From Macrostomum lignano (Eukaryota), in contig NIVC01000387.1 in assembly GCA_002269645.1 (NCBI GenBank), positions 1 through 64,000 of the forward strand: 64,000 bases of DNA, read 5' to 3'. Shown here in pieces: positions 7,912-63,819 of the stretch. The number at the start of each line of letters is the position of its first letter. Position 1 is the stretch's first letter. Made by a program: the position numbers and the translations under genes. The notes beneath the pieces are model-generated. The model was not told the origin of the DNA, searched no databases, and saw only the letters and a program-made list of their open reading frames with translations.

Positions 7912-8787
7912 CTTGCTCCCTTCCTCTGACATCTCTCCTTTCGCCTCTCTCCTCTCTCCCTTTATCTCCCTTCTTTCTCTCATCTCGCCTCTCTCCTCTC
8001 TTCCCTCCTCTCACATCTCACATCTCTCCCCTCTCCCCTCCACTCTCCTCCTTCTGGCCCGCAGTCTTGAGCTAGATTCTCTATCTGGCACTTAAAGTAA
8101 AATAGTTAGCCAATCCCTCGCAAGGAATTTCGATCATTACAATGAGCAAAAGTTGACATTAACAAAATTTTGGCGGGCGCGTTGTGCCAAGCCTGAACAG
8201 CTTCTCTAGACAGCACTCTGTGCTCTCCAGAATTACTTGAACTGTTAGCAGTGGCGCAAGCAGAATTTCTTATGTGGGGGGGGGGCGGATTCTGAAGGGT
8301 AAAGACCCAAGGGGGCGGAGGGGTGGCTCTGTATTTTGGCAAAAATGCGCTTGGTCCCCCTTTAATACAGCTTGGCAAACCTGATTGATTTTCCGGGATT
8401 TCCCCTGTCCTAGTTGTATTTCTCTAAAATTCTGGAAGATAAATCGAGATTCTAGATAATAGCTGCATCTAAGATTAGTTTGTTTTGCTATCGCATTGTA
8501 CCGTACAATTAATTATTGAAAATTTTAAACCTTTGCTGGCATACGCATATGTTATCTTTGACCTTACCTGTTGTTTAATAGGTAAATTATTACTGTATGG
8601 AGGTACATGTAGATATAGGCATTTTGACTGTCAACTGTCCACCCCATACAAGCATACGGCTTTCAAATAATTATGCAACCTTGTGCAAGGGTATGCCGCC
8701 TACTTACATGTAAAACTTTGAAATGAGTATTTATTTACGCCACTATCCAAGGGGGGGGGGGCGCGGCCGCGGGAGACCGACAGCGGA

Positions 8788-9365
8788 GACCGCCACAATT
8801 TGCCCGCCAGACAATTTGCCCGCCAGACAATTTGCCCGCCAGACAATTTGCCCGCCAGACAATTTGCCCGCCAGACAATTTGCCCGCCAGACAATTTGCC
8901 CGCCAGACAATTTGCCCGCCAGACAATTTGCCCGCCAGACAATTTGCCCGCCAGACAATTTGCCCGCCAGACAATTTGCCCGCCAGACAATTTGCCCGCC
9001 AGACAATTTGCCCGCCAGACAATTTGCCCGCCAGACAATTTGCCCGCCAGACAATTTGCCCGCCAGACAATTTGCCCGCCAGACAATTTGCCCGCCAGAC
9101 AATTTGCCCGCCAGACAATTTGCCCGCCAGACAATTTGCCCGCCAGACAATTTGCCCGCCAGACAATTTGCCCGCCAGACAATTTGCCCGCCAGACAATT
9201 TGCCCGCCAGACAATTTGCCCGCCAGACAATTTGCCCGCCAGACAATTTGCCCGCCAGACAATTTGCCCGCCAGACAATTTGCCCGCCAGACAATTTGCC
9301 CGCCAGACAATTTGCCCGCCGCCCTATTTCACCTTGAAAAGAACGGCGATCAAATTGTGGCGGTC
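8788..9365. repeat. 16-bp minisatellite (~33 copies) bracketed by a perfect 15-bp inverted repeat
   Basis: Unit acaatttgcccgccag spans ~8796-9320. gaccgccacaatttg (8788-8802) and caaattgtggcggtc (9351-9365) are exact reverse complements. Confidence 0.92.
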
Positions 9366-10390
9366 AAATGTACTCGTAGATGTAGTAGACCCGGCGGCCG
9401 CCCCCTTTGCCATGGCTGGACTTGCATATAAGGGGGGTAAATTTTGAGCTTACTTTGGCTTTTTAGACCAAAACAAAAATTTGGGCAAATCTGCCCCCAC
9501 TACTTTAAAAATCCTGAATTGACCACCAAATCGGACTCATCTAAATGAAAACTTAAGAATACAAGCAACATTGTACATGCGCTAGTGCTTAAGTAGTGGA
9601 GTATTAAAAAATATATTTTTTGTTGCGTTGATTTCGAAGATCAAAAGGTATTACTTATAAGTAGGTAGGCTAAAACGCACACTTTTGCGTTCACATCCAA
9701 TTTCTGAAGTGTATGAAACTCAGAAAAATTTGCACGAGTCGCCTATACCCCACTTTGGAGCTTGCAGCAATTTTTCAAAGAGATGGCTGCTCAAAGGGTT
9801 AAAAGTTCAAGTTAGCTGTAGTATGAGGATTGGTCAATGCAAATAAATAATGAGCTCATTATACAAGAAAATAATTAATAAGGATATCAATAGTTCGCCC
9901 CACTGTCCACTGCACGTACTGAAAGGCGTACTGTCAGGTTCGAGCACAAAAACACCCGAAACTAAAAAAATCAACTTTAAAAATTCTGCTCTTTACATAA
10001 TTTCCTCACAAAAATATTTCATACGTACAAAGAAGAAAACCTACAAACTTTTATCTTGCGGGATGGGGCGTACCCTTGAGGGCCGCCGGGGCGCCGGCCT
10101 AGAGGGTACGCCCCAATTTTTCTAACCACTGGGTCCAGTTCATCCAGTTCGGCATCACCGCGTACACTGTGAATTCATAAACGCGAGCAAACATGCAGTT
10201 ACCCATGCAAATGCTACTTAAATAGAAGGACGGGAAACTACATATGTACGTTTCTTGAAAAATTTGAGTGGTTGTACGTAGTAGCATATAAAATTAACAA
10301 AGAATCCTGGCTATATAAGCGAAAATCTCTACCGTACGAATTATTATCAAAAAGAGATGTAAGAAAGAAAAGACATACATCCATGTAAGT

Positions 10391-10798
10391 CAGTGGCGGC
10401 GCAGGGGGGAGCGGGGGGGGGGCGGGCTGCCCCGGGTGACCACCCCTCACCACCCTCAGGGGGTGACCACCCCCAGGGGGTGACCACCCACTTAAAAAAA
10501 ATTGGTACTTTCGTCTTTACCATATTTTTCAAAAGTGTGGTCACCCCATGGGGCATGGGGGTGGTCACCTGAGACCTCAGGGGGGTGGTCACCCGGTAGG
10601 GCCTGTAGGCTGTAAGGGTGGTCACCCTTTGAGGGCGAACCGCGAACTGGGCCTGGGCGATAACGAATCCTAACGATTTTGGAAAGCTTTTTTTTCTTCT
10701 TTTTTTATAATTTTTTCTGGGGGTGACCACCCAGCCGGGGGGGTGACCACCCAACCACCGCCCCCCCCCCACCAGCTGGAGGTCCTGCGCCGCCACTG
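10391..10798. mobile_element. hAT-type MITE, 408 bp, with subterminal GGTGACCACC motifs
   Basis: Perfect 15-bp TIRs cagtggcggcgcagg / cctgcgccgccactg. Exact 8-bp TSD atgtaagt at 10383-10390 and 10799-10806. About nine ggtgaccacc/ggtggtcacc motifs occur in both orientations. Confidence 0.93.
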
Positions 10799-13314: not shown

Positions 13315-15104
13315 TACGAGTGTTGCGAGTGCTAAGGGCGAACGAAGGACTAATGAAGGAGCATATTATCCGATTTCCTTCAGAGGCGATCCTTGCCAGT
13401 TATTTATCTTCGCGTGGAATTAGCAGTGAGTAAAAAATATGAGTATTATGTGCTGCCGCTTATACACTCTACAATATCATCAGCAGAATACGTTAAATGA
13501 GGTCGTTTGAAACAAAAAGAGTACGTAGATGGTAAGATGGCATGTATTTAGCTTCTTCCTAGTAAAATCAGTGAATTGTTTTGGTCGCGTACATAACCTA
13601 TTCAGCTTCTCCGCTCATAGTCACTCCAGCATCAAGTGCTAACAATGCAGATTAGCTATGAACTGTATTGGAATGCTTTGCATCATGCATTTGCATTTTA
13701 AATAAAAGGAATTTTTCTCTCGTTCATTGGCAGGTGTCGAGATGAGACAAAGCAATGTGCATTATGCTGCTGCCGATGCACAGAACGCAGAGTGCACGCA
13801 GGATCCTCGTAGAAGGATCTCAGAAAGAAGACGACAGTGACGACTACGGCATGTATGACTATTCAGCCACATTGGACAGAAATTAGCTGTTAGCCGTTTA
13901 AATATGTTTGGTCACACTTCTCTGTGACTGTGGCATGTAGAACATTTAATCCGTGACCTCTTTGCAATATTGCACTACCATCAAACGGTGACCCTCTTTC
14001 TCTCGCTCTGTACTGCTGTAACCAGTTTTTTGTCCCCCCTGTCGAGTTTTGCTAATCAAACTGTGAGAGAACTATGCAGCGCGTTTTTTCGCCAAACCTG
14101 GTATTATAAACATGTGACTAAAATAAAACAGGCTGCACTGCTTTTACCTATGCTTTTTACGATAATTCACTCTGTCCTGTTCTCAAACATTCCTGTTTTA
14201 TCGAATTCTCTTTTGATGACACAAATATGGTCACACGACGGTCACAAAGAATAGTGGGAGGTAGAGCCATAGGGCGAGAGGTATAAAGTATATGATTTTA
14301 CATTACAGTAGTCTCAATAGTTTGTCTACCCCTCTTGGCCTCCCTTTCTCCTCGCCCTCTGTCTCTGCAGCACCTGTTGGTTAAACATGAGAGGAAAGCT
14401 CGGCGAGAAAAGCCTCTGTGTAAAAGTCTCGTACCTGACATCCTGTCACTTTTAAATAGCCTTATGACTTTCCTGGTACATGGACATTTACATATGTAAG
14501 TTGTTTCCATTCGATCAAGGCAAATGATCTATAATTAGTATAGGTATACTAGTAATAGTAAATTCAGTTAGTCTTATCATGCACGAGCAATGGCGGATCT
14601 AGAATCTGCCATAGCATAGGGAGGCCAAACATGAGTATGAGGGGTACCAATTATGAGGGGGCGCAAAAATCTGTACTGCTGAAAATAACGAATGGGAAAC
14701 ACGGATTGCATGTTATCAATTTCTTAAATACGTATTTGAACTGAGAAGCACAATACCGGGGAGAAGTGTTTAGCCTTCTCTCTGCTTGGCAAGTGCACAT
14801 GCACTATCTACATGCAAGTTATTGAGCAGATTTGAGAGTTGTGTACAGTAGTAGAGGGTTACTTGACTTAGCTGCAGGGGTTCCAGGCATCCGGACGCAG
14901 CGAGGAGGCGTTATTTGTGGATCTATGAGAATTTTGAGAATTTCGTGATTGCCTGTTTACCTTAAGAAAGAAATTATAAAAAGGAAAGCTATTAGCAGAG
15001 ACGCGATTTTCTTTTGATAAATTCGACACAGGCAGGCAGCCAGGCAGGCAGACAGACAGGTAGGAAGGTAGGTAGGAAGGTAAACAGGCAATCACGAGAA
15101 ATTT

Positions 15105-15668
15105 CTTGCGGGAAAATCTTTCTGCTGGAAAAAGTCTGCGGGGAAAATTCGTGCGGGAAAATCTCGTGCGGTAAAGCTCCTGCGGGGAAAGCTCGGCGGG
15201 AAAAATTCCTGCGGGAAATTCTCGTGCGGTAAAGCTCCTGCGGGGAAAGCTCGGCGGGAAAAATTCCTGCGGGAAAATCTCGTGCGGTAAAGCTCCTGCG
15301 GGGAAAGCTCGGCGGGAAAAATTCCTGCGGGAAATTCTCGTGCGGTAAAGCTCCTGCGGGGAAAGCTCGGCGGGAAAAATTCCTGCGGGAAATTCTTGTG
15401 CGGTAAAGCTCCTGCGGGGAAAGCTCCTGCGGCAAATTTTCGTTGCGGGAAAAACTCGCTGCGGGAAAATCTCGTGCGGGAAAGCTCCTGCGGGGAAAGC
15501 TCGGCGGGAAAAATTCCTGCGGGAAATTCTTGTGCGGTAAAGCTCCTGCGGGGAAAGCTCCTGCGGCAAATTTTCGTTGCGGGAAAAACTCGCTGCGGGA
15601 AAATCTCGTGCGGGAAAGCTCCTGCGGGGAAAGCTCGGCAGGAAAAATTCCTGCGGGAAATTCTCGTG
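15105..15668 (+). repeat. Higher-order array of ~15-bp GCGGGAAA-type subunits
   Basis: ~61-bp higher-order unit gcggtaaagctcctgcggggaaagctcggcgggaaaaattcctgcgggaaattctcgt; about 19 exact GCGGGAAA by my count. Confidence 0.9.
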
Positions 15669-16911
15669 CTCCCGTTAATTGCCTCTTCAACTTCACGACT
15701 ACAACTTCAAGCTTCGCCATCCGCATGTTGTCAGCATGATGTCACCGATGAATTGAGGAGAATGTCAGTTTTGACGAGCTACATGTAAGTTTATCCACGT
15801 TGCTCGATTTTCTACCGAGGAAAAGCCTTTATTTATTACAGTGACTACGTTCACACAAATAAAATTTGTCAGACCGGTCGAATCATTGAAACAAACTTGC
15901 CTGGTCAAACTTCCACTGCTTGTAGAGAATTCACTACCATAGAGTTCTTTGCAGCTGCTTCTGTCATGCCCATTCTCTTGATTCTGGGCAGCGTTGCGCT
16001 AACACTTCCGTGCTTGCGTTTGAGAAGATCCTTGAAAAAAATTTCCATGTTCAACTGGACCCATGCAGATCTGCTGTGCAAGTGTCTCGAAGGCTGGCCA
16101 ACTTCATCTACATGTATAAAGGCATGGTGAGATTCCCGAGACGTCCAGGCAATTAACCCCCGTTTGCTCTCACCGACTTCGCAAACTGAAGCCGTAGCTG
16201 AATGCTTCTTTTAAACACCTGGCCTGTATAGATGCTAACTTTGTTATAGCCATCTATGTTTGCCTTTTACAGTTTATACGGAGTTTTCCGATACTAGCAT
16301 ATCTTACTGTCGTATGGCTCGGAAAGAAGTGCATTTTGGCGTAACTCCAGTAGTGGAATATAAAGGAAACTCCAGCATTAGAGCCTTGCAGACTCCAATA
16401 CTAGATTGATGGTCGATTTTAGCGTGCAGTTTAGTGCGACACTGCTCAGCGGCTTGCGTAGTTTTGATTAGTTGCAAGTTGCAGGACAGCCGGTTTACTT
16501 GCAGAATCTTTACTGACAGCAGGTTGATAAGGTGCAAATTTGACAAGTGCACCTAGGCCGGCGGGGAGGATACAAAATTTTGGCATTTTGCAGAGTGGGT
16601 TTTGCGCCTATGCGCCCAACATTTCCTGATAGATTTCGGCTCCCTGAGTCGATTGGCGCCGGTCCCAGAGCGCCAGAAGGTCATCCAGTAGAGTTATCTG
16701 CACTTTTCCAGTGCCAAAACCGAAACTCCAGTACTGGACGTTTATATCAGCTCCAGTGCTCGCTCCAACGCTGGAGTTTTCTTATGCTCCAATCCACTCC
16801 ACGGCTGCGTGTGGATCCACTTGCAATCAGTAAATTACAGTGGCAAAAGTAGAGATAAGTTTTGTTGTTAAATATTAAGCGTGCAAAGGTACATGTATTA
16901 TTAACTACTGA

Positions 16912-38721: not shown

Positions 38722-40265
38722 ATGCCAAGGAAATGCTGTGTGCAATCATGCAAGTCGAACTATTTGAACGAAAAAACTTCTGTTAAAGTCTTTACTTTCC
38801 CAAACGATCCTATAGAGAAGGAAAAATGGCGACTGGCTCTACCAAATGTCATCAAGGTGAGTCGAGCAGTAAACTGGTAATAATGAAATTCGTGATTTTA
38901 CTCTCTGCTGGGCAAGTTGGAGAGACAGTGCATTGTCTCTCTTGTTCGGAAGGACAAGTTTTGCGAGGTATTGTTTCTGTAGCACACCGCTCATAATTCT
39001 ACAGGATCCAACACCGCATATGGCAGTATGCGAGAAGCACTGGCCAATATCAGTGCCAATGATAAAACGCAGCAGATATGAGCGACCTGTCGACCCGCCG
39101 TCCGTCTTTGACGTTGCAATTCCCCCATCATGTTTTGTTCAATCGAAATGTGAGAATTTGTCAATACATAAACTGTACACGTATTGTGCTACCAACATAC
39201 AAACGATTCTCCATCGCATTGCTTACGTCCATAATTTTAGCATTAGCGAGAAAACCAAAAGTCCGTCGCGTTTTGTCTGCCGAAAGAAATTTTAAACCGG
39301 ACGAGTTGGAAGAATTTCGTAAAATCGACAGTTTGCCAGGCTGGAGCGAGCTCGTTTCTGCACTCAAATCATCAGATATCGTTGCTCAACATTCGCTGTT
39401 TGTATCGTTATGCAATGAAGAAGTTTATTTGTTTGGTTTGGATTCGAGCGGAGAACTAAAGATCAAGATTTTTATTTCGTCCAACTTTGCAACTCGTGCT
39501 TTTCACTATCATTCGCCGGTTCCGCTGAGAGATCTGCTAGGATTCCAGCCTACATTGAAGTATTTTTCACAACTCGATGCCACTATCGTTCGATGCATGA
39601 ATTTTCAACTGTCTGTTCAGCATGAGTTGAAAGCGATGTCGTCGTCATTTCTTCAAGTGTTGGAATTAGAAAATACTGTCATCACGAATCCATCGATACA
39701 GTTTTTAATTTCACAACTACAGCTAATTTCTACAAGTCCAGTGAGTCGTCGGTACGACATTGCCACACTAAGGCAGTCAGCTCTTATCTATTTAATCAGC
39801 AGTTCGGCTTACTCTCAACTTCGCACTCTGTTGCCACTGCCACATCAAAGAACTCTCCGTACAAATTTGGCCGGTCTTGGAGAGATTGGAACTGCAGCCG
39901 ATTCTGATGAAACTATTCGAACAGTTTTTTCTGCACTTCGCGGCACCCAGCTGAACTGCGTTTTACTATTTGACGAGATGTACGTGCAGCCATCTGTCAG
40001 ATTTAGATGTAAACATCTGTTTGGACAAGCGGAGGACGACTCGGCGAAAATTGCTCGGACAATTCTGGCGATAATGTTGAAGCCGCTAATGGGTGGAAAA
40101 CCATTCATATTGCGCCTTATACCAATTTTTCTACTCACAGCCGAATTTCTCAAACAGCAACTAAGTCAAAGCATTGAGTTGGTCAACAAGCATGGTGGTA
40201 CTGTTTTCGCTTTGGTTTGCGACAATCATCCTACTAACAGAAAATGTTTTAATTGTGTGCTTTGA
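38722..40265 (+). CDS. THAP-domain P-element-like transposase, spliced, C-terminally truncated (434 aa)
   Basis: Exons 38722-38856, 39005-39149, 39241-40265, phases consistent. THAP: MPRKCCVQSC...FPND...KW...VCEKHW. Core: LPLPHQRTL, LLFDEMYV, LVCDNHPTNRK; stop codon shortly after the second Asp. Confidence 0.85.
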
Positions 40266-47689: not shown

Positions 47690-50600
47690 ATGGGCTGTGG
47701 CTGCTCCAAGACCAGGCCCCACCAGCTGCGGTCGGTCGAGCAATGTCTGAACGATCAGATTGGAAATCACCTGACCCCGGTTCAGGTGGCGCTGGTACGC
47801 GACACATGGCGGCTACTGAGTCTGGACTTGGCCGGGACAGGCATAGCAATCTTCATCAGGTCTGGAGGCTGCTAATTGCTTCATTAATTCTACAGCCGCA
47901 AACACGCGCTCGCAGCGTTGAACTCTACGCGCACAACTGTAACACATTCCATTTATTCATATAATCAAATAACCATGTCTCAGCGTGAAATTCCATCTGC
48001 ACCCACCACAATGCACACTTGCACTCCCTTCCCATCTGCACCCACCTCAATGCACACTTGCACTCCCTTGCCATCTGCACCCACCACAATGTACAATTGC
48101 ACTCCCTTCCCATCTGCACCCACCACAATGTACAATTGCACTCCCTTCCCATCTGCACCCACCTCAATGCACACTTGCACTCCCTTGCCATCTGCACCCA
48201 CCTCAATGTACACTTGCACTCCCTTGCCATTTGCACCCACCTCAATGTACACTTGCACTCCCTTGCCATTTGCACCCACCTCAATGTACACTTGCACTCC
48301 CTTGCCATTTGCACCCACCTCAATGTACACTTGCACTCCCTTGCCATCTGCACCCACCACAATGCACACTTGCACTCCCTTGCCATCTGCACCCACCTCA
48401 ATGTACACTTGCACTCCCTTGCCATCTGCTGCACACTTGGCCATCTGCACCTCAATGTACACTTGCACTCCCTTGCCATCTGCAGTACACTCAGGAAGCA
48501 TATCTAACTTTTAGAAGCAGGCCGTAGGCTGAGCCTATCCTCGGAGCATCAGTATAGCTGAGACACCGGCCCGCTGGCCGACTCATCCAGACGTCGTCGT
48601 GTCCGCAGCAGCAGATTTGACTTGCGCAAGTTGGAGCGGCACGGCCTGGCGGTGATGCAGGCGCTGGGAGCCGCCGTGGACTGCCTGGAGGACGCGCTGA
48701 TGCTCAATTCAGTGCTGCTGGCTCTGGGCCAGGCACACTGGGCCTTCCAAGTCAGGCCGGAGCACCTCATGGTTAGTAAACTCGCTTCTCTTCGGCCGCG
48801 GTGGGGCAGAGTCAAACCAAAGCTAATGAAAAAATTACAATGCAGAAAAAAGCTTTGAACAGTACAGTTGGCGAGTTTATTGCACGCCTGTCAATGTACA
48901 TTGGGGGTAGAGCTTCGGGCTGGAGAGTTAGCCAGCCAGTTTATTGCGCCAGTCGATGTACATTAGGGGTAGAGCTTCGGGCAGGGGAGTTAGCCAGACA
49001 GTTTATTGCACGCCAGTCGATGTACATTGGGGGTAGAGCTTCGGGCAGGGGAGTTAGCCAGCCAGTTTGTTGCACGCCAGTCAATGTACATTGGGGGTAG
49101 AGCTTCGGGCAGGGGAGTTAGCCAGACAGTTTATTGCACGCCAGTCGATGTACATTGGGGGTAGAGCTTCGGGCAGGGGAGTTAGCCAGCCAGTTTGTTG
49201 CACGCCAGTCGATGTACATTGGGGGTAGAGCTTCGGGCAGGGGAGTTAGCCAGCCAGTTTGTTGCACGCCAGTCAATGTACATTGGGGGTAGAGCTTCGG
49301 GCAGGAGAGTTAGCCAGCCAGTTTATTGCACGTTAGTCAATGTACATTGGGAGAAGAGCTTCGGGCAGGAGAGTTAGCCAGACAGTTTATTGCACGTTAT
49401 TCAATGTGGGTACAATAGGCGAAGAGCTTTTGGGAGTTAGAATTTTCAATCGAAGACCCATCCTTTGTGTGCAGAATATTTTGTCCAACCCCAGTAATGC
49501 CTTTATCCACAGTTGAATTTATATTTTGGCTTCTGACTCCTTAACAAAAAAATCTATCTCAGGTCTGAGATCAGACCGGAAGCGCAGAGAAATTTCCATT
49601 TTGGCAGCCGATTGGAACTTTCAGTGGCGCTTCCTTTGAGCAGCAATAAAATCTTCTAGTGCGAGCTGCATCGCCCCTTTGCGCTCATAAACTGCGATTT
49701 TGTCGACAGTCCGCCAAAGCTGTAAATATTTATGAGCTGAAGAAATCGCGGGGAACAAGCCTTCACGCGTGGCAATTCCAACAGATTTGTGAAGCCTGAA
49801 GTACTGAGTTCAACTGATATAGATCCGCAGAGATCTGCAGGATTAGCATGGAGCACTTCAGCTCCATGCCAAACTGCAGCTTATCAGCGAATTCTATCAG
49901 AAAACAGCCAGAATATACGAAAAAAAAGTTTTGTACAAAGATGGAGAGGTGAATTCCCGTTGTGTTGATCCCTAAAGGTCCGCAAAATTCTTGTAAGTTA
50001 TTCTAAACTCACCAAGGCAGTAAGAGCACGAAACAAATTTAATTCTAAAGAAATTCAGTTGGAGCTCAACTTATCTCAACAATGCTTAAAAGATAATGGA
50101 AGTATTCTCCTTCCATCAGTCTGACTGGAAGCAAAAACTGGTCGGACCAGCTGACTAGAGAAACGCCGAGACAGCTGTCATCCCATGCAGTCTCTTTCTT
50201 GGGATTCCAGGGGATAATGGGGATAAAATGGGGATTTCATGTCAAAATTTGCTTGAATGTGAGAGTGCAGCGTTCTGCTTTTAGCTGCCCATGAATAACA
50301 GTAGCAATAATTATAATCATAATCATGATAATGATAGTAACAATACTAGTAGTATTAATAATAATATATTATGACGCTCGTATCTGGCCAATTGGGCCAG
50401 ATGTGCAACCGACAGCTCAGCCGCAGGTATTGCGCGGCGCATCTGAAGGCTGCGTACGGCTGTTCAGTCCAAGGACTGGGGGGTCGCCACACACACCCTC
50501 TGTTACCCCAGCTAATGCTGGCACCCATTTTACAGCAATAGATAAACTGAAGCAATGCAGAGTTAAGTGTCTTACCCAAGGACACAAATTGTTTCGAGTG

Positions 50601-52589: not shown

Positions 52590-53230
52590 GAGAAGAAGGA
52601 ATAGAGAAGAACGAAAAGAGATCGGAGAAAGGAGAATTGAGGCAATAAAGAAGAAAAGAGAGGAGAGGAGTGAAGGGAAAGGAGAGAAGAGGAGAGAGGA
52701 GAGAGAGAAGAGGACAGGAGAGAAGGAAGAAGAGAGAAGAGAGAGGAGAGGAGAGAGAAGAGAGAGGAGAGGAAAGGAGAAGAGAGAAGGGAGAGAAGGG
52801 AGAGAAGAGAGAGGAGAGGAGAAAGGGAGAGGAGAAAAGGGAGGAGAGGAGGAGAGAAGAGAGAGGAGAGGAAGGGAGAGGAGAGAAGAGGAGAGGAGAG
52901 AAGAGGAGAGGAGAGAGGAGAGAAGGGAGAGGAGGAGGAGAGGAGAGAGAAAGGAGAGAGGAGAGAGAGGGAGAGGAGAGGAGGAGAGGAGAGAGGGAGA
53001 GGGAGAGAGAGAGGGAGAGGAGAGGAGAGGGAGAGGAGAGGAGAGAGGAGAGGAGAGGAAGGGAGAGGAGAGGAAGGGAGAGGAGAGAAGAGAGGAGAGG
53101 AGAGAGAGAGAGAGAGGAGAGAGAAAGGAGAAGAGAGAAGGGAGAGGAGAGGAGAGAAGAGGAGAGGAGAGAGGAGAGAAGGGAGGGGGGAGGAGAGGAG
53201 AGGAAAGGAGAGAGGAGATTATAGAGAAGA
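52590..53230 (+). repeat. Polypurine (GAGAG/GGAGA)n tract
   Basis: About 640 bp almost entirely A/G. Confidence 0.95.
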
Positions 53231-53551
53231 GAGCTGAGAAGAGACTAACCTTAAGCGGACCGAATTGCCATTGTGAAGTTTCAAAGGACCCAGAGGGCGC
53301 ATGTGGCCCGCTGGTCGCAGTTGCCCACCCCTGATCAAAATACTGTCAGTCAGTCGGAATCTTCTGTCGATAAGTTAAAGATCAGACTCAAATATTTAAA
53401 GATATTCAAGCCAAGCAGCTGCAGGTGTCTCGGCCAGCCTGAACCGACCGGACAGTTCGCGTGTATTTAGCCAAATGGGGTTAATAATGGGGCGGCCCCT
53501 CCCCGCCTGAGCATGCAGTCTCCTCCGGATTCAGCGCGCGCGCAGCCCGCG

Positions 53552-54014
53552 TCAACCAAAAAAGCTGCAGGAGGTGCACACGCAGTCGTTGTACATGTGC
53601 CAGTTGCCCGTGTAGTAGCCCGAGCACTCGGTACGCCGGGGTGCGAATAGCGGCACGAGTCCTCGCACACCTCACTCATGATCGCTATCATGGCCTCTGG
53701 GAAAATGAGGATTTTGTTGCTAGGATGACTGCGGGCTCAGAATCCATGAGCGCTTCAAGTTTTAGGTCAATTTAAAAGGCTGCCACGAAAGCTCTCAGGA
53801 TCTGACCGGTCATACACAGCTCACCACTCAGTCATGGCTGTCAGTGTCTGTAGTCATACACAGCTCACCCTCAGTCATAGCACTCACCGTATCTGGTCAT
53901 AGAAAGCAAGCGGTCCGGATCTTGGAGCAACTTTGGCACAAACGGGGCCCTGCAGTCAACCAAGGCGGCCATGAGACAGCAGGCAAGCAGCAGCCGCAGG
54001 CTGAAGAAGTTCAT
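53552..54014 (-). CDS. Secreted Cys-rich peptide precursor (CS-alpha-beta defensin-like), two exons, ~90 aa, with a 1-nt frameshift as given
   Basis: Exon 1 54014-53888: MNFFSLRLLLACCLMAALVDCRAPFVPKLLQDPDRLLSMTRY, gtgagt donor, phase 1. Exon 2 from 53696 after ttttcccag, phase 1: EAMIAIMSEVCEDSCRYSHPG. After a one-base shift at ~53633 it reads TECSGYYTGNWHMYNDCVCTSCSFFG* with strong coding codon bias. Confidence 0.7.
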
Positions 54015-54406
54015 CTTCTGATACGGCGGTCAGCAGAGAGCAGCAGAAGCAGATCTCCGGCGGGAGCAGAGCCGGCTACCCTTCTAAATATTGGAAGAGG
54101 GCGGCAGCGGCCGGACGAATGTCGAAACCGTCCAATGGGGTCGCTGGTGGACAAAGGACGGGAAATTACAGGTGCAGCCAGCCGGGGCAGCCGAGCTCGT
54201 GGCATCCTTTAACCGGACGGCCAGTCTAATGAGATTCATGCGGGTGCATCTCTCAGCTCAGTGCCGCTCCCGAGCCGGACCGGCAGAGCTCGATAGGATT
54301 AGGAGAAAAATTGAAAGCCCGATCAAGGAAGCTGATCTCAAGCCGGATGCGCTGGGGAATATCCCCAGCCATGATCTAATCCCAATCTCCTGCCCAGAGT
54401 GATAAT

Positions 54407-54556
54407 TCAGTCAGTCAGTCAGTCAGTCAGTCAGTCAGTCAGTCAGTCAGTCAGTCAGTCAGTCAGTCAGTCAGTCAGTCAGTCAGTCAGTCAGTCAGTC
54501 AGTCAGTCAGTCAGTCAGTCAGTCAGTCAGTCAGTCAGTCAGTCAGTCAGTCAGTC
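54407..54556 (+). repeat. (CAGT)n microsatellite, ~37 copies
   Basis: Perfect tetranucleotide run. Confidence 0.98.
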
Positions 54557-55039: not shown

Positions 55040-55690
55040 AGAATAGTACATTAAAAGTACATAGTTTCTGTAGCTTACTACCCTAAAAGTACACAGTTGC
55101 TATAGATAATTACCCCAAAAGTACACAGTTTCTATAGCTAACTACCCTAAAAGTACAGTCGCTGCGTTTACTGCCCTAAACGTACAGTTTATAGCTTACT
55201 ACCCAAAAAGTACAGTTTTTATAGCTAGCTACCCTGAAAGTACACAGTTTCTGTAGCTTACTACCCTTAAAGTACACAGTTTCTGTAGCTTACTACCCTT
55301 AAAGTACACAGTTTCTATAGCTAACTACCCTAAAAGTACAGTTTCTATAGCTAACTACCCTAAATGTACAGTTTCTGTAGCTAACCCTAAAAGTACAGTT
55401 TCTATAGCCTACAACCCTAAGAGTACAGTTTCTGTAGCCTACAACCCTAAAAGTACAGTTTCTATAGCCTACAACCCTAAAAGTACAGTTTCTGTAGCTA
55501 ACCCTAAAAGTACAGTTTCTATAGCCTACAACCCTAAAAGTACAGTTTCTGTAGCCTACAACCCTAAAAGTACAGTTTCTATAGCCTACAACCCTAAAAG
55601 TACAGTTTCTGTAGCCTACAACCCTAAAAGTACAGTTTCTGTAGCCTACAACCCTAAAAGTACAGTTCCTGTAGCCTACGATCCCAAAAG
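55040..55690 (+). repeat. 30-bp minisatellite
   Basis: aagtacagtttctatagcctacaaccctaa with variants, about 20 copies. Confidence 0.95.
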
Positions 55691-56575
55691 TGCAAACCAT
55701 ACAGTTGTGTCTTCTAACAAACCAAAAGTACAAATCGCTTGTAGCCACTGCTAAGCGCGGGAAGTCAGTGAACATCAGACCTAGCAGCTCTACTAGTGGC
55801 ACAGTCAAGGACGCAAGTGCACATTGATTCGCACAGCCTGGGGTTAGCGTGTTGTTACAATTTAGTAAATATATAATGCTCAAATATAATATTGGGTACA
55901 GAAGTGCCGACAAATATCTGAGCAAAATCACGGATGCTTCACGTGCATAGAAATACGCTTAACAAAAGCTGATTGTACTGAACTAAAACTTCGCCACAGA
56001 AACAGCTGATTAACACTGGGCGCCTAGCCGGGAATACTGAGCAGAGAGGCTGGGGGGGGGGCTTACAAAGCCAGCCAAATCCGCAAGCAATTAATATTGT
56101 CAGTTAAACAATATTCTATTGAAAAATTCGAAAACAATTCTTGGTTAAAAGAGTAATAAAATAAACGATTTCCTGGTTAAATAGTGGAGCGGGGCGAACA
56201 CCAGACACGGAGGCGTGAGACTGGGATTTCATGAGAACTGGAAGCGGCGGCCTCGTCAGTATTGAGCACACTGCCGCGGTTTTCCGGTTTTGGCCATAGA
56301 CAGAAGTTCGGCACCCCAAAGAGAGCCGGGATTTCAGGGGACTGCTTAGGCAATACACTTTTTTGTGGCCTTAATTTAAAAGACTTAAGTAGGCTTGAAG
56401 AGTTTCCAATCCAAGCTACTCTCAGTTTCTCTTCTCAATTTCAATTGAATGCCGTGAAATGGAAGTTTGGTCTTCAAAGACTGATTACATAACCCTGTTG
56501 AAATACAATGGTAAGAAAGCGAGGGAAAAGAAGGTTAAAAATCAGTTTTAAGGCTAAAAACATCAAACCAGCGGC

Positions 56576-59500
56576 TCAGGCGTGCGAGTCCAGCTGGCTG
56601 AGCTGGCTGCTCAGCGACAGGCAGTCGTCGCCGTCCTGCAGCAGCAGCTGGTCGCGCAGTTTCTCGAAGCCGCTGACCAGGCACTGGTGGTACTCCATCT
56701 GGTCTGAGCGGACCAGCGCCTTGTTCACCCGGAGCCCCAGCTTGCAGGCCCGCAGCAGCTCGGCGAACTCCTCCTCGAGCTCTTGCAGCCGGCGGTCGCC
56801 AGTGTAGGCGATGCGGCGATTCGGCGCCAGGAAGGCGTGCGCGTAGGCCATGGGGCCGGCGTGCACCTGCGGGGATCGGGGTGAGCCTGTGTGACTGGTG
56901 TCTCTGTGACTGGCGCCTGTGTGACTGGGGCTGGTGCCTGTGAGACTAACGCTGGTGCCTGCGTGACTGGCGCCTGTGTGACTGATGCCTGTGTGACTGG
57001 TGCCTCTGTGACTGATGCCTGTGTGACTGGGATGAGCCTGTGTGACAGGTGCCTGTGTGACTGGCGCCTGTGTGACTGGGGCTGGTGCCTGTGTGACTGG
57101 TGCCTCTGTGACTGATGCCTGTGTGACTGGGATGAGCCTGTGTGACAGGTGCCTGTATGACTGGCGCCTGTGTGACTGGGGCTGGTGCCTGTGTGACTGG
57201 TGCCTCGGTGACTGATACCTGTGTGACTGGGATGAGCCTGTGTGACAGGTGCCTGTGTGACTGGCGCCTGTGTGACTGGGGCTGGTGCCTGTGTGACTGG
57301 TGCCTCTGTGACTGGCGCTGGTGCCTGTGTGACTGGGGTGAGCCTGTGTGACTGGCGCCTGTGTGACTGATGCCTGTGTGACTGGCGCATGTGTGACTGA
57401 TGCCTGTGTGACTGGCGCCTGTGTGACTGGGGCTGGTGCCTGTGTGATTGATACCTGTGTGACTGGGATGAGCCTGTGTGACAGGTGCCTGTGTGACTGG
57501 GGCTGGTGCCTTGTGACTGGGGTGAGCCTGTGTGACTGGCGCCTGTGTGACTGGGGCTGGTGCCTTGTGACTGGCGCCTGTGTGACTGATGCCTAAGTGA
57601 CTGGCGCATGTGCGACTGATGCCTGTGTGACTGGCGCCTGTGTGACTGATGCCTGTGTGACTGGCGCCTGTGTGACTGATGCCTGTGTGACTGGCGCCTG
57701 TATGACTGGCGCCTGTGTGACTGATGCCTGTGTGACTGGCGCCTGTGTGACTGGGGCTGGTGCATGTGTGATTGGTACTGGTGTCTGTGTGACTGGGGCT
57801 GGAGCCTGTGTGACTGGTGCCTGTGACTGGGGCTTGGTGCCTGTGTGAATATGACTGGTGCCTGTGTGAATGTGACTGGTGTCCGTTACTGCCTTCAAGC
57901 CTTGAGCCAAAAGCCGCTATCAATCCAGGATGCGAGCATGAATTCCAAAACAGCTCGAAAGCCAGCCGCGCACCTGAGTGGCCAGACAGCCCTGCAGGAC
58001 CATCTGCAGCCGCTTCATGTCCGGCGGCTCCGCCTCGGCGGCCGATCGAATCTTCGCGGCGGCGGCCCGCAGCTCCAGCACCGCCACAGCCAGCGGGCTG
58101 AGATCCTCGTGCTCCGACCGGATGACGCGCAGCCGTTTCACCACGGTGGGGAAGGCGGCCTCGGCGGTCAGGCGGGTGCGCCGGCGCCACTGATCCTCCA
58201 CCGAGCCGTGCCGCTCCCCGCTGCGGGTGAACGGCGTCTCCAGCACGAAGTGGCGCGAGCTGCCGTCCGCCTCGCTGGTCTCGGCCTGCACGTAGGTGAT
58301 CTGCACGTAGGCCCGGCCCGACTCCAGCTTGGTGTCGTCAACCTGCGCGACAGATTTACAGCCTCTGTTACAGATTTTTGACAGCAAAGCATTATAGTCA
58401 TGTACAGGATTTAAAAAAATTATGCACAGGCTTTTCCGCATCATCCACAGGCTGTTCTGCATTATCGACAGGCTTTTCTGCATTATCGACAGGTTTTTCT
58501 GCATTATCTACAGGCTTTTCTACATTATCTACAGGCTCTTCTGCATCATCTACAGGCTTTTCTACATTATCTACAGGCTCTTTTGCATCATCTACAGGCT
58601 TTTCTACATTATCTACAGGCTTTTCTACATTATCTACAGGCTCTTCTGCATCATCTACAGGCTTTTCTACATTATCTACAGGCTCTTTTGCATCATCTAC
58701 AGGCTTTTCTACATTATCTACAGGCTTTTCTACATTATCTACAGGCTCTTCTGCATCATCTACAGGCTTTTCTACATTATCTACAGGCTCTTTTGCATCA
58801 TCTACAGGCTTTTCTACATTATCTACTGGCTCTCTGTATTATCTACAGGCTTTTCTACATTATCTACTGGCTCTCTGTATTATCTACAGGCTTTTCTGCA
58901 TTATCTACAGGCTTTTCTGCATCATCTACAGGCTTTTCTACATTATCTACAGGCTTTTCTTAAATATCTACAGGCTTTTCTGCATTATCTAGACTTTTCT
59001 ACATTATCTGCCTACTACAGGCTTTTCTGCATTATCTGCCTACTACAGGCTTTTCTGCATTATCTACTGGCTCTCTGTATTATCTACAGGCTTTTCTACA
59101 TTATCAACTGGCTCTCTGTATTATCTACAGGCTCTTTTGCATCATCTACAGGCTTTTCTACATTATCTACAGGCTCTTTTGCATCATCTACAGGCTCTTT
59201 TGCATCATCTACAGGCTTTTCTACATTATCCACTGGCTCTCTGTATTATCTACAGGCTCTTTTGCATCATCTACAGGCTTTTCTACATTATCTACAGGCT
59301 CTTTTGCATCATCTACAGGCTTTTCTACATTATCCACTGGCTCTCTGTATTATCTACAGGCTTTTCTGCATTATCTACAGGCTTCTCTACATTATCTACA
59401 GGCTCTTTTGCATCATCTACAGGCTTTCTACATTATCTACTGGCTCTCTGTATTATCTACAGGCTTTTCTACAGTATCTTAGGCTGTTCTGCAGCGTCAT

Positions 59501-62500
59501 CATGTCTCTTCTACACTGGCCCAGCAAAACGCACAAACATATATACTACTCATATTACTCATAGTAGACCGGCAAACATTTCCAGCGCAATGAGCAGTAG
59601 GAAGCAGAGACCAGATAATTAAAGCAATCCGCAGGAGAGGGAGAGGAGAGGGAGAGGCCGCAGGTGCGCCTGCCGCTGCCGACCGGAACAGCACTGAATT
59701 GAAGCGATGCCGCAATTACATGCAATATTCCATCAGCGTCTACTGACCGAACATCTGCTGAGCAACTGGCGCAGCGAATGCTCAAAAGAGCTGCTAATTT
59801 AACACACAGAGAGAAGAAAGGAGAAAACCGAGACCGCGTATAACGGCCCAGCAGTTGCCGTGTGATCCGCAAATTTTGTTTGAAAAGAAAAATAATTGTT
59901 AAATTGTCGTCAAAAATATCTTCCGAGGTAATTACTGCGGAAAGCGGGTTAAATAAACTGTTGAGAGCCGCCCCAGCCCGATTTGCGGGCCTTGCAAGAT
60001 GGCATCTAGTTGGAATGGGGTCTCAAGCAGCATGGGATTTTGCTAGAATGGGACCTCAACAGGATGGGGTCTCAAACACAGTGAGATTTTCTTAGAATGG
60101 CATCTTAACAGAGTGACTTCTCAGCCGGTTGGAATATAAGTAGGATGGGATCCCAGCAAGATGGGATTGCATCCTGATGGGATCTCAGAAGGATTGGATC
60201 TCAGCAGAATGAGATCTCAGCAGGATGGGATCTCAGCAGGATGGGATCTCAGCAGGATGAGATCTCAAAAGGATGGGATCCCAGCAAGATTGGATTTCAT
60301 CAGGATGGGATCTCAGCAGGATGGGATCTCAGCAGGATGGGATCTCCGCAGGATGGGATCTCCGCAGGATGGGATCTCCGCAGGATGGGATCTCAGCAGA
60401 ATGAGATCTCAAAAGGATGGGATCCCAGCAGGATGGGATCTCCGCAGGATGGGATCTCAGCAGAATGAGATCTCAAAAGGATGGGATCCCAGCAGAATGG
60501 GATCTCAGCAGGATGGGATCTCAGCAGGATGGGATCTCAGGAGAATGGGATCCCAGCAGGATGGGAACTCAGTGAGTGGCAAGTGGCAGCAAGAGGAAGG
60601 CTTAGTGAAATGGATGAGATGGCACGCGGAGAGCCGGTCACTTGACCGGGATTCCGCAGCGAAGCCGCTCACCTCGCCGCTGTCGGTCAGCATGGTGACC
60701 TTGTCTGCGCCAAACCGGGCCTCGTAGACGGCGCGCAGCCGATCGGCCAGCTCGGCCAGCCGCGTGAGGCCGGGCTCTTTGTACACAAAGACTTGCTTCT
60801 CCTCGAACAGGTCGCCGTAGAGGCCAACACGGTAGAAGGTTTCCAGGAAGCGCTTGCCCCGCGTGCTGCCCACGGCTTTGCATGCGGCGGCGCACTGCTC
60901 GTACAGAGCCGCCTGGCGCGCGTAGTCGCGCCGCGCCTCGTGGAAAGCGAGCGCCGGGCGCAGGCAGGGCGCCACAAGTTCGTAGCGCTCGGCGCGGGCC
61001 AGAAGGTCGGCGGCCTGCTGGATGAGATCGGCGAGGCCCTCCGGACTGCAGCCGTCGCGTTCCTCCTGAGGCAGGTCGTCGCCGAAGCGCTGCTCGAACT
61101 GCTCGATGTTGGGCGACAGGCCGGCAAAGGCCTCGTAGCCGTTGGGGTGTTCGCCTGGGAGGGGCGGCGGTTCGAGCCAGCCGATCGATATTCGCACGCC
61201 GAATCCCAAAAAATCCCACCTCACGGATCCTTCATCCCATTTTGATCCCAAATCCCAGATTCGTTAATCTAACAACTTTAAACCCCCATCCTGCATCCCA
61301 TTTTTGATCCCACATCACAAGCCCTTTTTAATCCCAAATCCCAAAATCCAATTTCGATCCCGAACCCCACAATCCTATTTTTGATCCCGAATCACACAAT
61401 CCCATTTTTGATTCCGCATCCCACAATCCCATTTCTGATCCCACATCCCACCATCCCATTTTGATCCCGCATTTCAAATTCTATTTTTGATCTCAAGTTT
61501 CACATTCCCATTTTTTATCCCAAATCCCATAATCAATTTTTTGATCCCGCATCTCAAATCCCATTTTTGATCCCGCATCCCAGAACCTGCAAATCGCGTC
61601 CTGCAGCCGCGCAACTCACCGCGAACCCGCAGCACCTCGGCCGTGAGGGCGGCCTGGTGCAGCACGCAGAAGGCGGCCTCGCTGAGGTGTCCGGCCTCGG
61701 CGTGCCTCTCGGCCATGTTTCTCAGGTAGGTGAGGCGCAGGCTGGGCGTGTGGCTGTAGGAGTTGGCCAGGCGCCAGTGCAGATCCACGCACATCTCCGG
61801 GTTGCCGCGGTGCAGCGCGAAGGCGGCGGTGGTGCGCAACACGGCCAGCAGCGAGTCGCAGAGGCGGCCGAGGTCGCCGCTGCCGCCACCGTCTGCCAGT
61901 CGGCGCAGCAGCCGCAGGCAGGCTTCGAAACGGCGCAGACGGGCCGGGCTGGCGCTGAGGCGTTCGGCCTGGCCGGCCAGGGCCACCATGGCCTGCGAGT
62001 GCAGCCGGCCTGCGCAGCCGGCAACCGCCTGGTTCTGGCGGGCCATGAGGTACAGCAGGCCGGAGGCCAGCTGCCGGATGTTTGGCTGGCGCGACTCGCC
62101 GCAGCGCAGCACGCAGGCGCAGAGCTGGCGAACGCAGGCGCTGGGGGAGCCGGGAGCGAACAGCACAGAGGCGAAGCGGGCAACAAAGAGGCGCAGCGAG
62201 GCGAAGGCGTGGCGCAGCAGCGGCTCGCACTGGCGCAGGTCCAGCAGCTGCAGGTAGGCGTTCACCACCCGCCTGAAGGCCGGGGCCTCGCTGCTGCCGG
62301 ACAGCAGGTCGCGTTGGAAGTGCTGCCAGAAGACGCACAGCGAATGCAGGGCGGCGAGGCCGGCCTGGGCGCTCACGTGACCCTCGGCTACCCAGCGGGC
62401 GTCGGCGGCCTTGTGCTCGGCGGCAGCTGGAAAAGGGGGTTCGGTAGGGATTGATTTCTACCGCTAAAATCTACCGCTTCATATACTTTAATATGATCTA

Positions 62501-63819
62501 AAAGGAACTGAACACAGCATTCAGCACAGCAGTTTCAAAGATGACGCCAGACTCTCTCACCATCGGCCTCGTCAAGATTCTTGGAAGCCCTGAACCCCCG
62601 GATGCCCTGGCGCCGGTCCTTGCTGGCCAGGGCGCCGCTAGACGAGATGCTCCTGCAAGGGTTGGAGATGAGCCCCGAGTTAGGGGGGGGGGTGATGGCC
62701 GAAATTCGACACTGAAAGCATGCACTTACTCGAATGTTTTCGCTTTTGTCTTTCCATTGTAGCGAAACGTTTCGAGAGCGATTCTGAAATTGGGAGGTAG
62801 GCGAGTTTTCGAGGATTAAAAACAGGACAAAGTGGTCGGAAGTTAGCTGAACAAAGGCTGAATTGGGGTGGGCTGTGGCTAGCTAAGCCAGACAAAGACT
62901 TGGTGCAGTGAGCTGTGGCTAGCTAAGCCAGACAAAGACTTGGTGCAGTGAGCAGTGGGCAGCTAAGCCAGACAAAGACTTGGTGCAGGTGAGCAGTGGG
63001 CAGCTAAGCCAAACAAAGACTTGGTGCAGGTGAGCAGTGGGCAGCTAAGCCAAACAAAGACTTGGTGCAGGTGAGCAGTGGGCAGCTAAGCCAAACAAAG
63101 ACTTGGTGCAGGTGAGCAGTGGCCAGCTAAGCCAAACAAAGACTTGGTGCAGGTGAGCAGTGGGCAGCTAAGCCAAACAAAGACTTGGTGCAGGTGAGCA
63201 GTGGGCAGCTAAGCCAAACAAAGACTTGGTGCAGGTGAGCAGTGGCCAGCTAAGCCAAACAAAGACTTGGTGCAGGTGAGCAGTGGCCAGCTAAGCCAAA
63301 CAAAGACTTGGTGCAGGTGAGCTGTGGGCAGCTAAGCCAAACAAAGACTTGGTGCAGGTGGGCAGTGGGCAGCTAAGCCAAACAAAGACTTGGTGCAGGT
63401 GGGCAGTGGGCAGCTAAGCCAAACAAAGACTTGGTGCAGGTGGGCAGTGGGCAGTAATCCACATAGCAGCTGTGGCGACTCACTCGAGAATTTCCAGGAA
63501 GTCGAGGCGGTCATTGGGAGACAAGCTGCTGAGCCAGGAGACGAGTACTTCTAAAAGAGGCAAAAACATTCGCAATCCCGTCAGGCTGTTTATCGCAAAA
63601 TGAAAGTCGCACCTGCGAAAACTCAAAGATAATTCAATTTAACAGATTTCAGTTGGAAAGAAGCGCTTCTGCTTAAAAGCAGTACAAAGGGAGACGCCAC
63701 AAAATGGCATAAATTGCTCATCGCCAATGGGATTTAAAATTGCAGCCAAATTCAATAAGCGGACAAAACAGAAAAACAGGTCGGATGACGGTGGCTGGCG
63801 CACCTGCCGGCGAATCTGC
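56576..63819 (-). CDS. DOCK9: DOCK-D (DOCK9/10/11, zizimin) GEF, 3' exons including DHR-2; gene continues beyond the window
   Basis: Exons 63819-63804 (16-nt, tentative), 63550-63484, 62652-62561, 62426-61620, 61154-60673, 58342-57974, 56866-56576; phases consistent. Motifs DLHWRLANSYSHTPSLRLTYL, FYRVGLYG...VYKEP, FVLETPFT...EDQWRRRT, LQMVLQG...QVHAGPMAYAHAFL. AGPxAYAxAFL favours DOCK-D; the symbol is family-level only. Confidence 0.92.
56885..57875 (+). repeat. ~15-bp gcctgtgtgactg-based minisatellite in last DOCK intron
   Basis: Repeated ggcgcctgtgtgact / gatgcctgtgtgact units. Confidence 0.95.
58425..59470 (+). repeat. 21-bp minisatellite in DOCK intron
   Basis: tctacaggcttttctacatta and variants, about 50 copies. 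Confidence 0.95.
60130..60565 (+). repeat. 16-bp minisatellite in DOCK intron
   Basis: ggatgggatctcagca and variants. Confidence 0.93.
61200..61585 (+). repeat. Degenerate atcccatttttgatccc repeat in DOCK intron
   Basis: Repeated atccca(t/c)...tttttgatccc units. Confidence 0.85.
62875..63455 (+). repeat. 41-bp minisatellite in DOCK intron
   Basis: agctaagccaaacaaagacttggtgcaggtgagcagtgggc, about 14 copies. Confidence 0.95.

Follow-up and report, generated by a model that had tools for sequence, protein, structure and literature searches.

A transcribed Macrostomum lignano gene for a predicted acidic, CS-alpha-beta-like mini-protein, and the probable origin of a frame break in one of its copies

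In the ten-cysteine reference array of Tarr (2016), the positions C3, C4, C8 and C9 constitute the cysteine-stabilised-helix motif, and the bond C2-C6 completes the CS-alpha-beta fold by definition (PMC5116183). The eight-cysteine members from molluscs (defensins, myticins and mytilins) and nematodes (ABF) carry C5-C10 as an extra bond, giving the set C2-C6, C3-C8, C4-C9 and C5-C10 (PMC5116183). Non-canonical subsets of these cysteines have a precedent in the nematode peptide ASABF-6Cys-alpha, which keeps C3-C6, C8 and C9 (PMC5116183). A survey of flatworms by HMM and BLAST, which included both proteomes of Macrostomum lignano, found no CS-alpha-beta peptides, a result that was called surprising (PMC10414684).

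We analysed a 64,000-nt stretch of M. lignano DNA (the window), in which a preliminary description drawn from the sequence had placed a hidden, probably undescribed two-exon gene for a secreted six-cysteine, defensin-like peptide. Our main reading, which we hold at a probability of roughly 55%, is that this locus is one of at least three syntenic copies of the gene Mlig002908, that the gene is lineage-restricted and transcribed, that the frame break in the window copy is most likely a long-read consensus error, and that the product would be an acidic, CS-alpha-beta-like mini-protein.

Gene structure and intact copies

The gene occupies 54014-53552 on the minus strand and consists of two exons, of 127 and 145 nt, separated by a GT-AG intron of 191 nt (Table 1) that is in phase 1 at both exon boundaries. 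At its start, exon 2 continues the reading frame of exon 1 (EAMIAIMSEVCEDSCRYSHPG...), whereas its C-terminal protein-like part (...ECSGYYTGNWHMYNDCVCTSCSFFG, followed by the stop codon) lies in a different frame, the switch falling within the break interval given in Table 1. Read unshifted, the window copy encodes a 118-aa product with a low-complexity Ala/Thr/Gly tail. The coordinates, intron length, intron phase and frameshift position of the preliminary description were all correct, on the minus strand, and its two-exon gene with a signal peptide was borne out by an intact 90-aa database protein and by canonical, phase-matched splice sites.

Table 1 Features of the peptide locus and its surroundings in the window, and the loci of the intact copies.
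Feature	Position	Strand	Description
Start codon	54014-54012	minus	ATG
Exon 1	53888..54014	minus	42 codons plus one base; donor G|GTGAGT
Predicted signal peptide	54014-53952	minus	21 residues, within exon 1; then residues 22-42 and first base of codon 43
Intron	53697..53887	minus	phase 1, GT-AG, 191 nt; acceptor ttttcccag|; contains 43-bp tandem repeat
Exon 2	53552..53696	minus	long helix (predicted) and six-cysteine domain; 145 nt in window, 146 nt in intact copies
Stop codon	53554-53552	minus	TGA
43-bp tandem repeat	53808..53901		2.2 copies; starts in last 14 nt of exon 1
Frame break site	53625..53640	minus	one-base shortfall in a short mononucleotide run relative to both intact copies
Cluster of window-private run shortfalls	53505..54202		four one-base shortfalls within 700 bp; three-way alignment
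Intact copy L001	NIVC01000225.1		assembly GCA_002269645.1; gene spans 720 bp
Intact copy L002	NIVC01003856.1		assembly GCA_002269645.1; gene spans 464 bp
Minisatellite arrays	903-1681, 8700-9447, 14868-15788, 47918-48527, 55052-55691		periods roughly 16-117 bp
Minisatellite arrays	56725-58190, 58378-59622, 60142-60572, 62868-63461		periods roughly 16-117 bp

We searched the pieces of the window copy separately, without crossing the break, and used the intact public protein for all other analyses. The spliced, unbroken N-terminal 63 residues matched one database protein at 100% identity over the whole query, and since this protein is an intact one from M. lignano, the feature is more than chance. 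It is 90 aa long and is deposited as 'hypothetical protein BOX15_Mlig002908g1/g2 [Macrostomum lignano]' (PAA49515.1, PAA87550.1; UniProt A0A1I8G296, with the UniRef name 'Secreted protein'). PAA49515.1 is intact and has cysteines at residues 53, 57, 67, 81, 83 and 86; the resulting spacing, C-x3-C-x9-C-x13-C-x-C-x2-C, is exactly the one that had been read across the break in the window copy, and where HPG.TECSG had been guessed the intact copies have HPGVPECSG. The gene is already annotated in M. lignano, in GenBank as well as in UniProt, and is uncharacterised. It is hidden in the window copy only, so that the earlier wording 'hidden' and 'undescribed' does not apply to the sequence as such; the new element is the reading of the peptide's architecture.

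Both loci with an intact copy (L001 and L002) are syntenic with the window, with a DOCK-family gene upstream in the same orientation and colinear flanks of at least 17 kb on each side. Polarised three-way alignments revealed a sister relationship between the window and L002, which differ by about 0.3%, and placed L001, the more diverged copy, at about 1.5% from both. Exon 1 of the window is identical to that of L002 and shows two synonymous differences from that of L001. The M. lignano genome has been reported to comprise three subgenomes after a recent duplication, with retained heterozygosity (PMC10733133; PMC5730564). Given this structure and the synteny with L001 and L002, the window is a third copy of the locus, and three syntenic copies, as judged from their alignment, fit the reported organisation. 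Within the extent of each locus, all three copies show the peptide gene, the DOCK gene and a downstream gene encoding a 635-aa protein in colinear arrangement.

The 43-bp tandem repeat begins within the end of exon 1, and the GGTGAG donor motif therefore recurs inside the intron; the donor-like sites repeated in this array could permit alternative splicing. The repeat is present in 2.2 copies in both the window and L002, whereas in L001 (about 10130-10575) it is expanded by about 256 bp, which lengthens the intron from 191 nt (window and L002) to 447 nt and leaves the protein unchanged. We considered an alternative acceptor inside exon 2, which would join exon 1 to the C-terminal frame without a frameshift, and rejected it by eye, as it is without a polypyrimidine tract and would lose the CxxxC pair; the existence of intact copies also makes it unnecessary.

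Evidence for a gene and probable cause of the frame break

Gene models deposited in GenBank for the Mlig_3_7 assembly derive from a genome-guided RNA-seq transcriptome assembly (PMC5730564), and hence the spliced two-exon model at L001 and L002 rests on transcripts. No expression or tissue data for Mlig002908 were found by full-text identifier search or in the supplements of M. lignano papers. Comparison of L001 with L002 showed differences at 17 of 1,032 aligned non-coding sites around the gene (1.6%), and in the coding sequence two synonymous and no non-synonymous changes. The neutral expectation would be 3.5 non-synonymous changes (P(0) = 0.03), which provides modest evidence, in the right direction, for coding constraint between the two aligned copies.

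The window and L002 were identical at every aligned base across the 621 bp covering the gene. Over 1,317 bp (54556-53240), they differed by two substitutions (window-private, at 54122 and 53246) and four one-base gaps. All four gaps fall in mononucleotide runs, the base is missing from the window in each case, and L001 agrees with L002 at 4/4 sites. Only one of these shortfalls, the frame break, affects the coding sequence, and the other three map to the 5' flank and to the 3' flank or UTR. Three-way alignment revealed 13 window-private substitutions in 6.5 kb; in the other unique sequence so aligned (5.2 kb) there were 11 such substitutions and no private run shortfall. Indels outnumber substitutions 2:1 in a single patch only, and the change is always a contraction of a run; such a pattern is the hallmark of a long-read consensus that was poorly polished at this point, and is not that of natural divergence.

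Two readings compete with that of a real gene whose frame was broken by the assembly. The more radical one denies the gene altogether and sees a chance open frame with fortuitous splice-like sites; the open reading frames are indeed short, and repeats in the window create long spurious ones. Against this stand the transcript-derived reference models at two loci, splice sites that are canonical and phase-matched, an N-terminus resembling a signal peptide, zero non-synonymous changes between diverged copies, and a single-sequence structure model that reaches pLDDT 80. We regard this reading as highly improbable, and in practice a chance ORF can be dismissed. The other accepts the gene and holds the break to be real, making the window copy a young pseudogene, one of three redundant copies that the recent genome duplication left, which decays while the other two stay intact. 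With three subgenomes in M. lignano, a redundant copy can be lost without cost, under relaxed selection (PMC10733133). Furthermore, true substitutions separate the window from L002, which marks it as a distinct copy or haplotype and not the same contig, the unshifted product of the window copy has no match among database proteins, and indels also arise naturally at high frequency in mononucleotide runs. What speaks against decay is the concentration of four private one-base run deletions within 700 bp beside only two substitutions, in this patch only, and the location of three of the four outside the coding sequence, which is not what decay of the coding sequence in particular would look like. 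The preliminary description had left a sequencing indel and recent pseudogenisation side by side; the three-way alignment favours the former, and we judge an assembly error to be the probable cause of the frame break, with recent pseudogenisation an unlikely one; under either reading, the genome contains intact copies.

A frameshift check of the DOCK gene for errors across the window yielded one candidate, a 2-bp C-run difference near 62692 that is not clearly exonic. This apparently unpolished stretch of the assembly shows how a patch of one-base errors can conceal short genes from annotation; further short features may likewise escape notice in it.

Predicted product and its relation to cysteine-rich peptides

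The N-terminus of the 90-aa precursor contains one arginine (Arg7) and a 12-residue hydrophobic core (residues 8-19; Kyte-Doolittle 9-residue means 2.1-2.9), and Val19 at -3 and Cys21 at -1 before Arg22 suit signal-peptidase cleavage by heuristic assessment. Residues 1-21 show all three regions (n, h and c) as well as small residues at both -3 and -1, and are predicted, on these heuristic grounds, to be a signal peptide. No dibasic or furin-type site was found after the signal peptide in the precursor, and so we saw no evidence for the cleaved pro-region of about 30 residues that had been proposed earlier; the structure model instead folds this stretch into helices, with pLDDT near 90.

The predicted secreted chain (residues 22-90) has 69 aa, a mass of 7.9 kDa, a pI of 5.0 and a charge of -3.1 at pH 7. 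The cysteine domain alone carries a net charge of -4 to -5 and 15-18% aromatic residues, and the pI ranges from 4.4 to 5.0 over both chains. With a predicted net charge of -3 to -5, the peptide is unlikely to be a classical cationic antimicrobial. The C-terminal residue of the secreted chain is glycine. Such a residue is convertible to a C-terminal amide by peptidylglycine amidating enzymes. We propose that the precursor would enter the ER via its 21-residue signal peptide, be cut after Cys21 and be secreted without further processing, except perhaps for amidation at the C-terminal Gly, and that residues 22-90 would then fold into an acidic mini-protein (69 residues, 7.9 kDa, pI about 5) held by three intramolecular disulfides.

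Single-sequence AlphaFold2 prediction gave a pLDDT of 63.6 for the whole precursor, and a mean pLDDT of 80.0 with a pTM of 0.67 for residues 22-90, from which the signal peptide had been removed. Foldseek matches of the full-precursor model to lysyl-tRNA synthetases were set aside as meaningless at its pLDDT of 63.6. The 22-90 model comprises a pair of short helices (28-31 and 33-37), followed by a long one (41-60) and a beta-hairpin with strands at 69-71 and 81-83. C53-x3-C57 lies inside the predicted long helix (block pLDDT 82-90) and C81-x-C83 coincides with the predicted strand 81-83 that follows it (block pLDDT 66-68), although a model built without an alignment may simply echo a learned CxxxC/CxC pattern. 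From the motif we infer the pairings 53-81, 57-83 and 67-86. In such an arrangement, the long helix with C53-x3-C57 would be pinned to the last beta-strand (C81-x-C83) by two disulfides, forming the cysteine-stabilised-helix motif, and the C67-C86 disulfide would staple the beta-hairpin.

Foldseek comparison of the 22-90 model with the PDB returned nothing significant (best E 3.2). CS-alpha-beta proteins made up 13 of the 21 matches listed. The top matches, obtained with this single-sequence model at E 3-9 and a probability of at most 0.13, were the fungal defensin eurocin and the scorpion alpha-toxins BmK M1 and Lqh-alpha-IT; their TM-scores were 0.32-0.35 when normalised to the query and 0.34-0.49 when normalised to the target. 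Eurocin (2lt8) aligned over 37 columns with 27% identity, an rmsd of 3.5 and a target-normalised TM-score of 0.49.

Sequence searches for relatives were performed at several depths. A tblastn search of the window with the three peptide pieces recovered the gene itself only and hence no paralogue in the window. Word-index searching of 5.8 billion clusters, queried both with the unbroken N-terminal stretch and with the complete protein, recovered PAA49515.1 alone, and phmmer against 1.84 billion representative proteins returned the protein itself and five large proteins (E 5e-15 to 2e-4), with no homologue among them. Those of the large proteins that were examined proved to be spurious matches to highly repetitive sequence, three with bacterial surface-repeat domains; the best of them repeats a short motif (GYYTGNYG and similar) about nine times, which inflates the summed score. 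Pfam at family thresholds gave nothing for the 90-aa protein, and when relaxed to E 10 gave only mussel Myticin-prepro, in the cysteine domain (E 0.29; 11.8 bits versus a cut-off of 28.5). Searched by sequence, the PDB yielded only an unrelated chain with the full protein as query (E 0.73) and gave no match to the cysteine domain; Rfam had no match in the window. As far as the searched collections go, the gene appears restricted to M. lignano, and these searches detected no sequence homology to any CS-alpha-beta member family. The signals from Foldseek and Pfam agree and are suggestive, but all of them lean on one cysteine pattern, and for this reason the two pointers to CS-alpha-beta are not independent.

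When placed on the Tarr array, the flatworm peptide maps to C3, C4, C5, C8, C9 and C10. It therefore has six of the eight positions of the mollusc/nematode eight-cysteine type and is missing C2 and C6. The third disulfide, C2-C6, has no counterpart, as no cysteine lies N-terminal to C53 in the secreted chain and C67/C86 correspond to C5/C10. Because this defining feature was tested and found absent, we do not file the peptide as a CS-alpha-beta member. The class assignment of the preliminary description accordingly stands in part: CxxxC on a helix and CxC on a strand are predicted, and weak, non-significant matches by Foldseek and to Myticin-prepro point the same way, but the C2-C6 bond is absent. 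With the CS-alpha-beta superfamily (myticin, mytilin, MGD; ASABF/ABF) the peptide shares the predicted helix-borne CxxxC and the CxC on the following strand, and with the mollusc and nematode members also a further cysteine after the helix, another just after the CxC (C5 and C10), and a small product with a predicted signal peptide. It differs in having about 30 predicted helical residues before the motif, whereas known members have a short n-loop or strand, in its long loops (9 and 13 residues) and negative net charge, in the missing C2 and C6, and in showing no significant sequence or structure match to the superfamily. Positive net charge, which is typical but not strictly defining of antimicrobial CS-alpha-beta defensins, was not observed (-3.1 for the secreted chain; -4 to -5 for the cysteine domain).

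Other cysteine-rich peptides offer partial parallels. Knottin/cyclotide-type cystine-knot peptides follow the order CxxxC ... C ... CxC ... C with an expected I-IV, II-V, III-VI pairing, and the cysteine order of the flatworm peptide is compatible with theirs. Knottins, however, are compact and mostly beta, with little or no helix and short loops, whereas a 20-residue helix is predicted here with good confidence, and none appeared among the Foldseek matches to the 22-90 model. Like ASABF-6Cys-alpha, the flatworm peptide is a six-cysteine derivative of the eight-cysteine array without the standard insect-defensin six (PMC5116183); the subset retained differs (C3-C5 and C8-C10 in the flatworm peptide), and no sequence similarity between the two was detected. 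The cysteine-rich 'AMP-like peptides' predicted in helminths (PMC10414684) are likewise flatworm-specific, small and secreted, with no homology to classical antimicrobial peptides. The present peptide is anionic, whereas the predictors used for such peptides favour cationic ones, and it was not found in the portion of the supplementary lists of PMC10414684 covered here.

We regard the peptide as a lineage-restricted variant that resembles CS-alpha-beta peptides and probably works in a like manner, with a disulfide-pinned helix-hairpin presenting a stable surface to a target. The peptide may belong genuinely to the CS-alpha-beta (cis-defensin) lineage, within Platyhelminthes, or be an independently evolved copy of it, a tentative proposition that we put at less than even odds. 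Its principal competitor, for which we likewise would not claim even odds, takes the gene to be real and the peptide to be unrelated to CS-alpha-beta, an orphan, fast-evolving secreted protein of another or convergent fold (for example a seminal-fluid, pheromone-like or mucus component) in which CxxxC...CxC is coincidence. The failure to find a homologue in 1.84 billion representatives or 5.8 billion clusters would suit an orphan, as would a survey that found flatworms to be without CS-alpha-beta peptides (PMC10414684) and the absence of the canonical C2-C6 bond (PMC5116183). The acidic, aromatic-rich character of the peptide and its roughly 30 predicted helical residues before the motif, unlike known members, lean in the same direction, and the cysteine order also fits the I-IV, II-V, III-VI connectivity generally known from knottins. 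Coincidence has more difficulty in accounting for motif cysteines that, in the model, sit on the very secondary-structure elements the CS-alpha-beta family requires.

If the CS-alpha-beta reading is true, the peptide would have an undescribed disulfide architecture, namely the cysteine-stabilised helix plus C5-C10, without C2-C6, and its N-terminal helical extension and acidic surface would point to target binding and not to a membrane-lytic antimicrobial. Confirmation of the fold would make it the first candidate CS-alpha-beta-type peptide from a flatworm, one missed by homology searches. It would bear on whether flatworms really lost these ancient scaffolds of defence peptides and toxins or only diverged beyond recognition, and would indicate that the staple between helix and strand holds even where the bond regarded as completing the fold is missing.

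Possible roles and genomic surroundings

The most speculative step of our proposal concerns function. Lipid II-binding fungal defensins and channel-binding toxins are target binders built on the CS-alpha-beta scaffold. Like the non-lytic CS-alpha-beta defensins and toxins, the secreted peptide may bind a specific target, and its action would not be by cationic membrane disruption; an anionic, aromatic-rich surface speaks against cationic membrane lysis and favours specific binding. Our first guess is a defensive or offensive effector, which is a speculative assignment. A reproductive or pheromone-like signal is our second guess and more doubtful still; we considered it because secreted orphan proteins that evolve fast are typical of reproductive tissue in the genus Macrostomum (cf. 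PMC7336406). For M. lignano, transgenesis has been established (PMC5730564). The three approaches available in this animal make the function of the peptide directly testable. In situ hybridisation and RNAi, the other two, are in use.

Other open reading frames in the window belong to ordinary animal genes (an LRR/ANP32-like protein, PTH2 and a rhodopsin-type GPCR), interspersed with transposase remnants and many minisatellites. The longest, at 3878-5905 (+), is an intact, ATG-initiated ORF of 675 aa with no Pfam match; its composition and surroundings point to a mobile-element protein, either domesticated or recently active. A 395-aa ORF at 39078-40265 (+) contains a TNP-like RNase H N-terminal domain (PF21787, E 7.5e-9) and is a transposase remnant of the P-element/THAP9 type.

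Simple repeats flank the peptide gene on both sides. A perfect (TCAG)37 microsatellite lies at 54407-54556, about 400 bp upstream of the start codon, and its edge is where BLAST alignments to L001 and L002 are interrupted. About 330 bp downstream of the stop codon lies a purine-rich (GAGAG/AGAGGAG)n tract of 560 bp (52658-53218), which gives rise to long spurious Glu/Arg/Gly ORFs and renders alignments between the copies unreliable. On both strands, the dense minisatellite arrays listed in Table 1 leave several reading frames open; their copy numbers vary among the three copies of the locus, and several of them lie inside the span of the DOCK gene.
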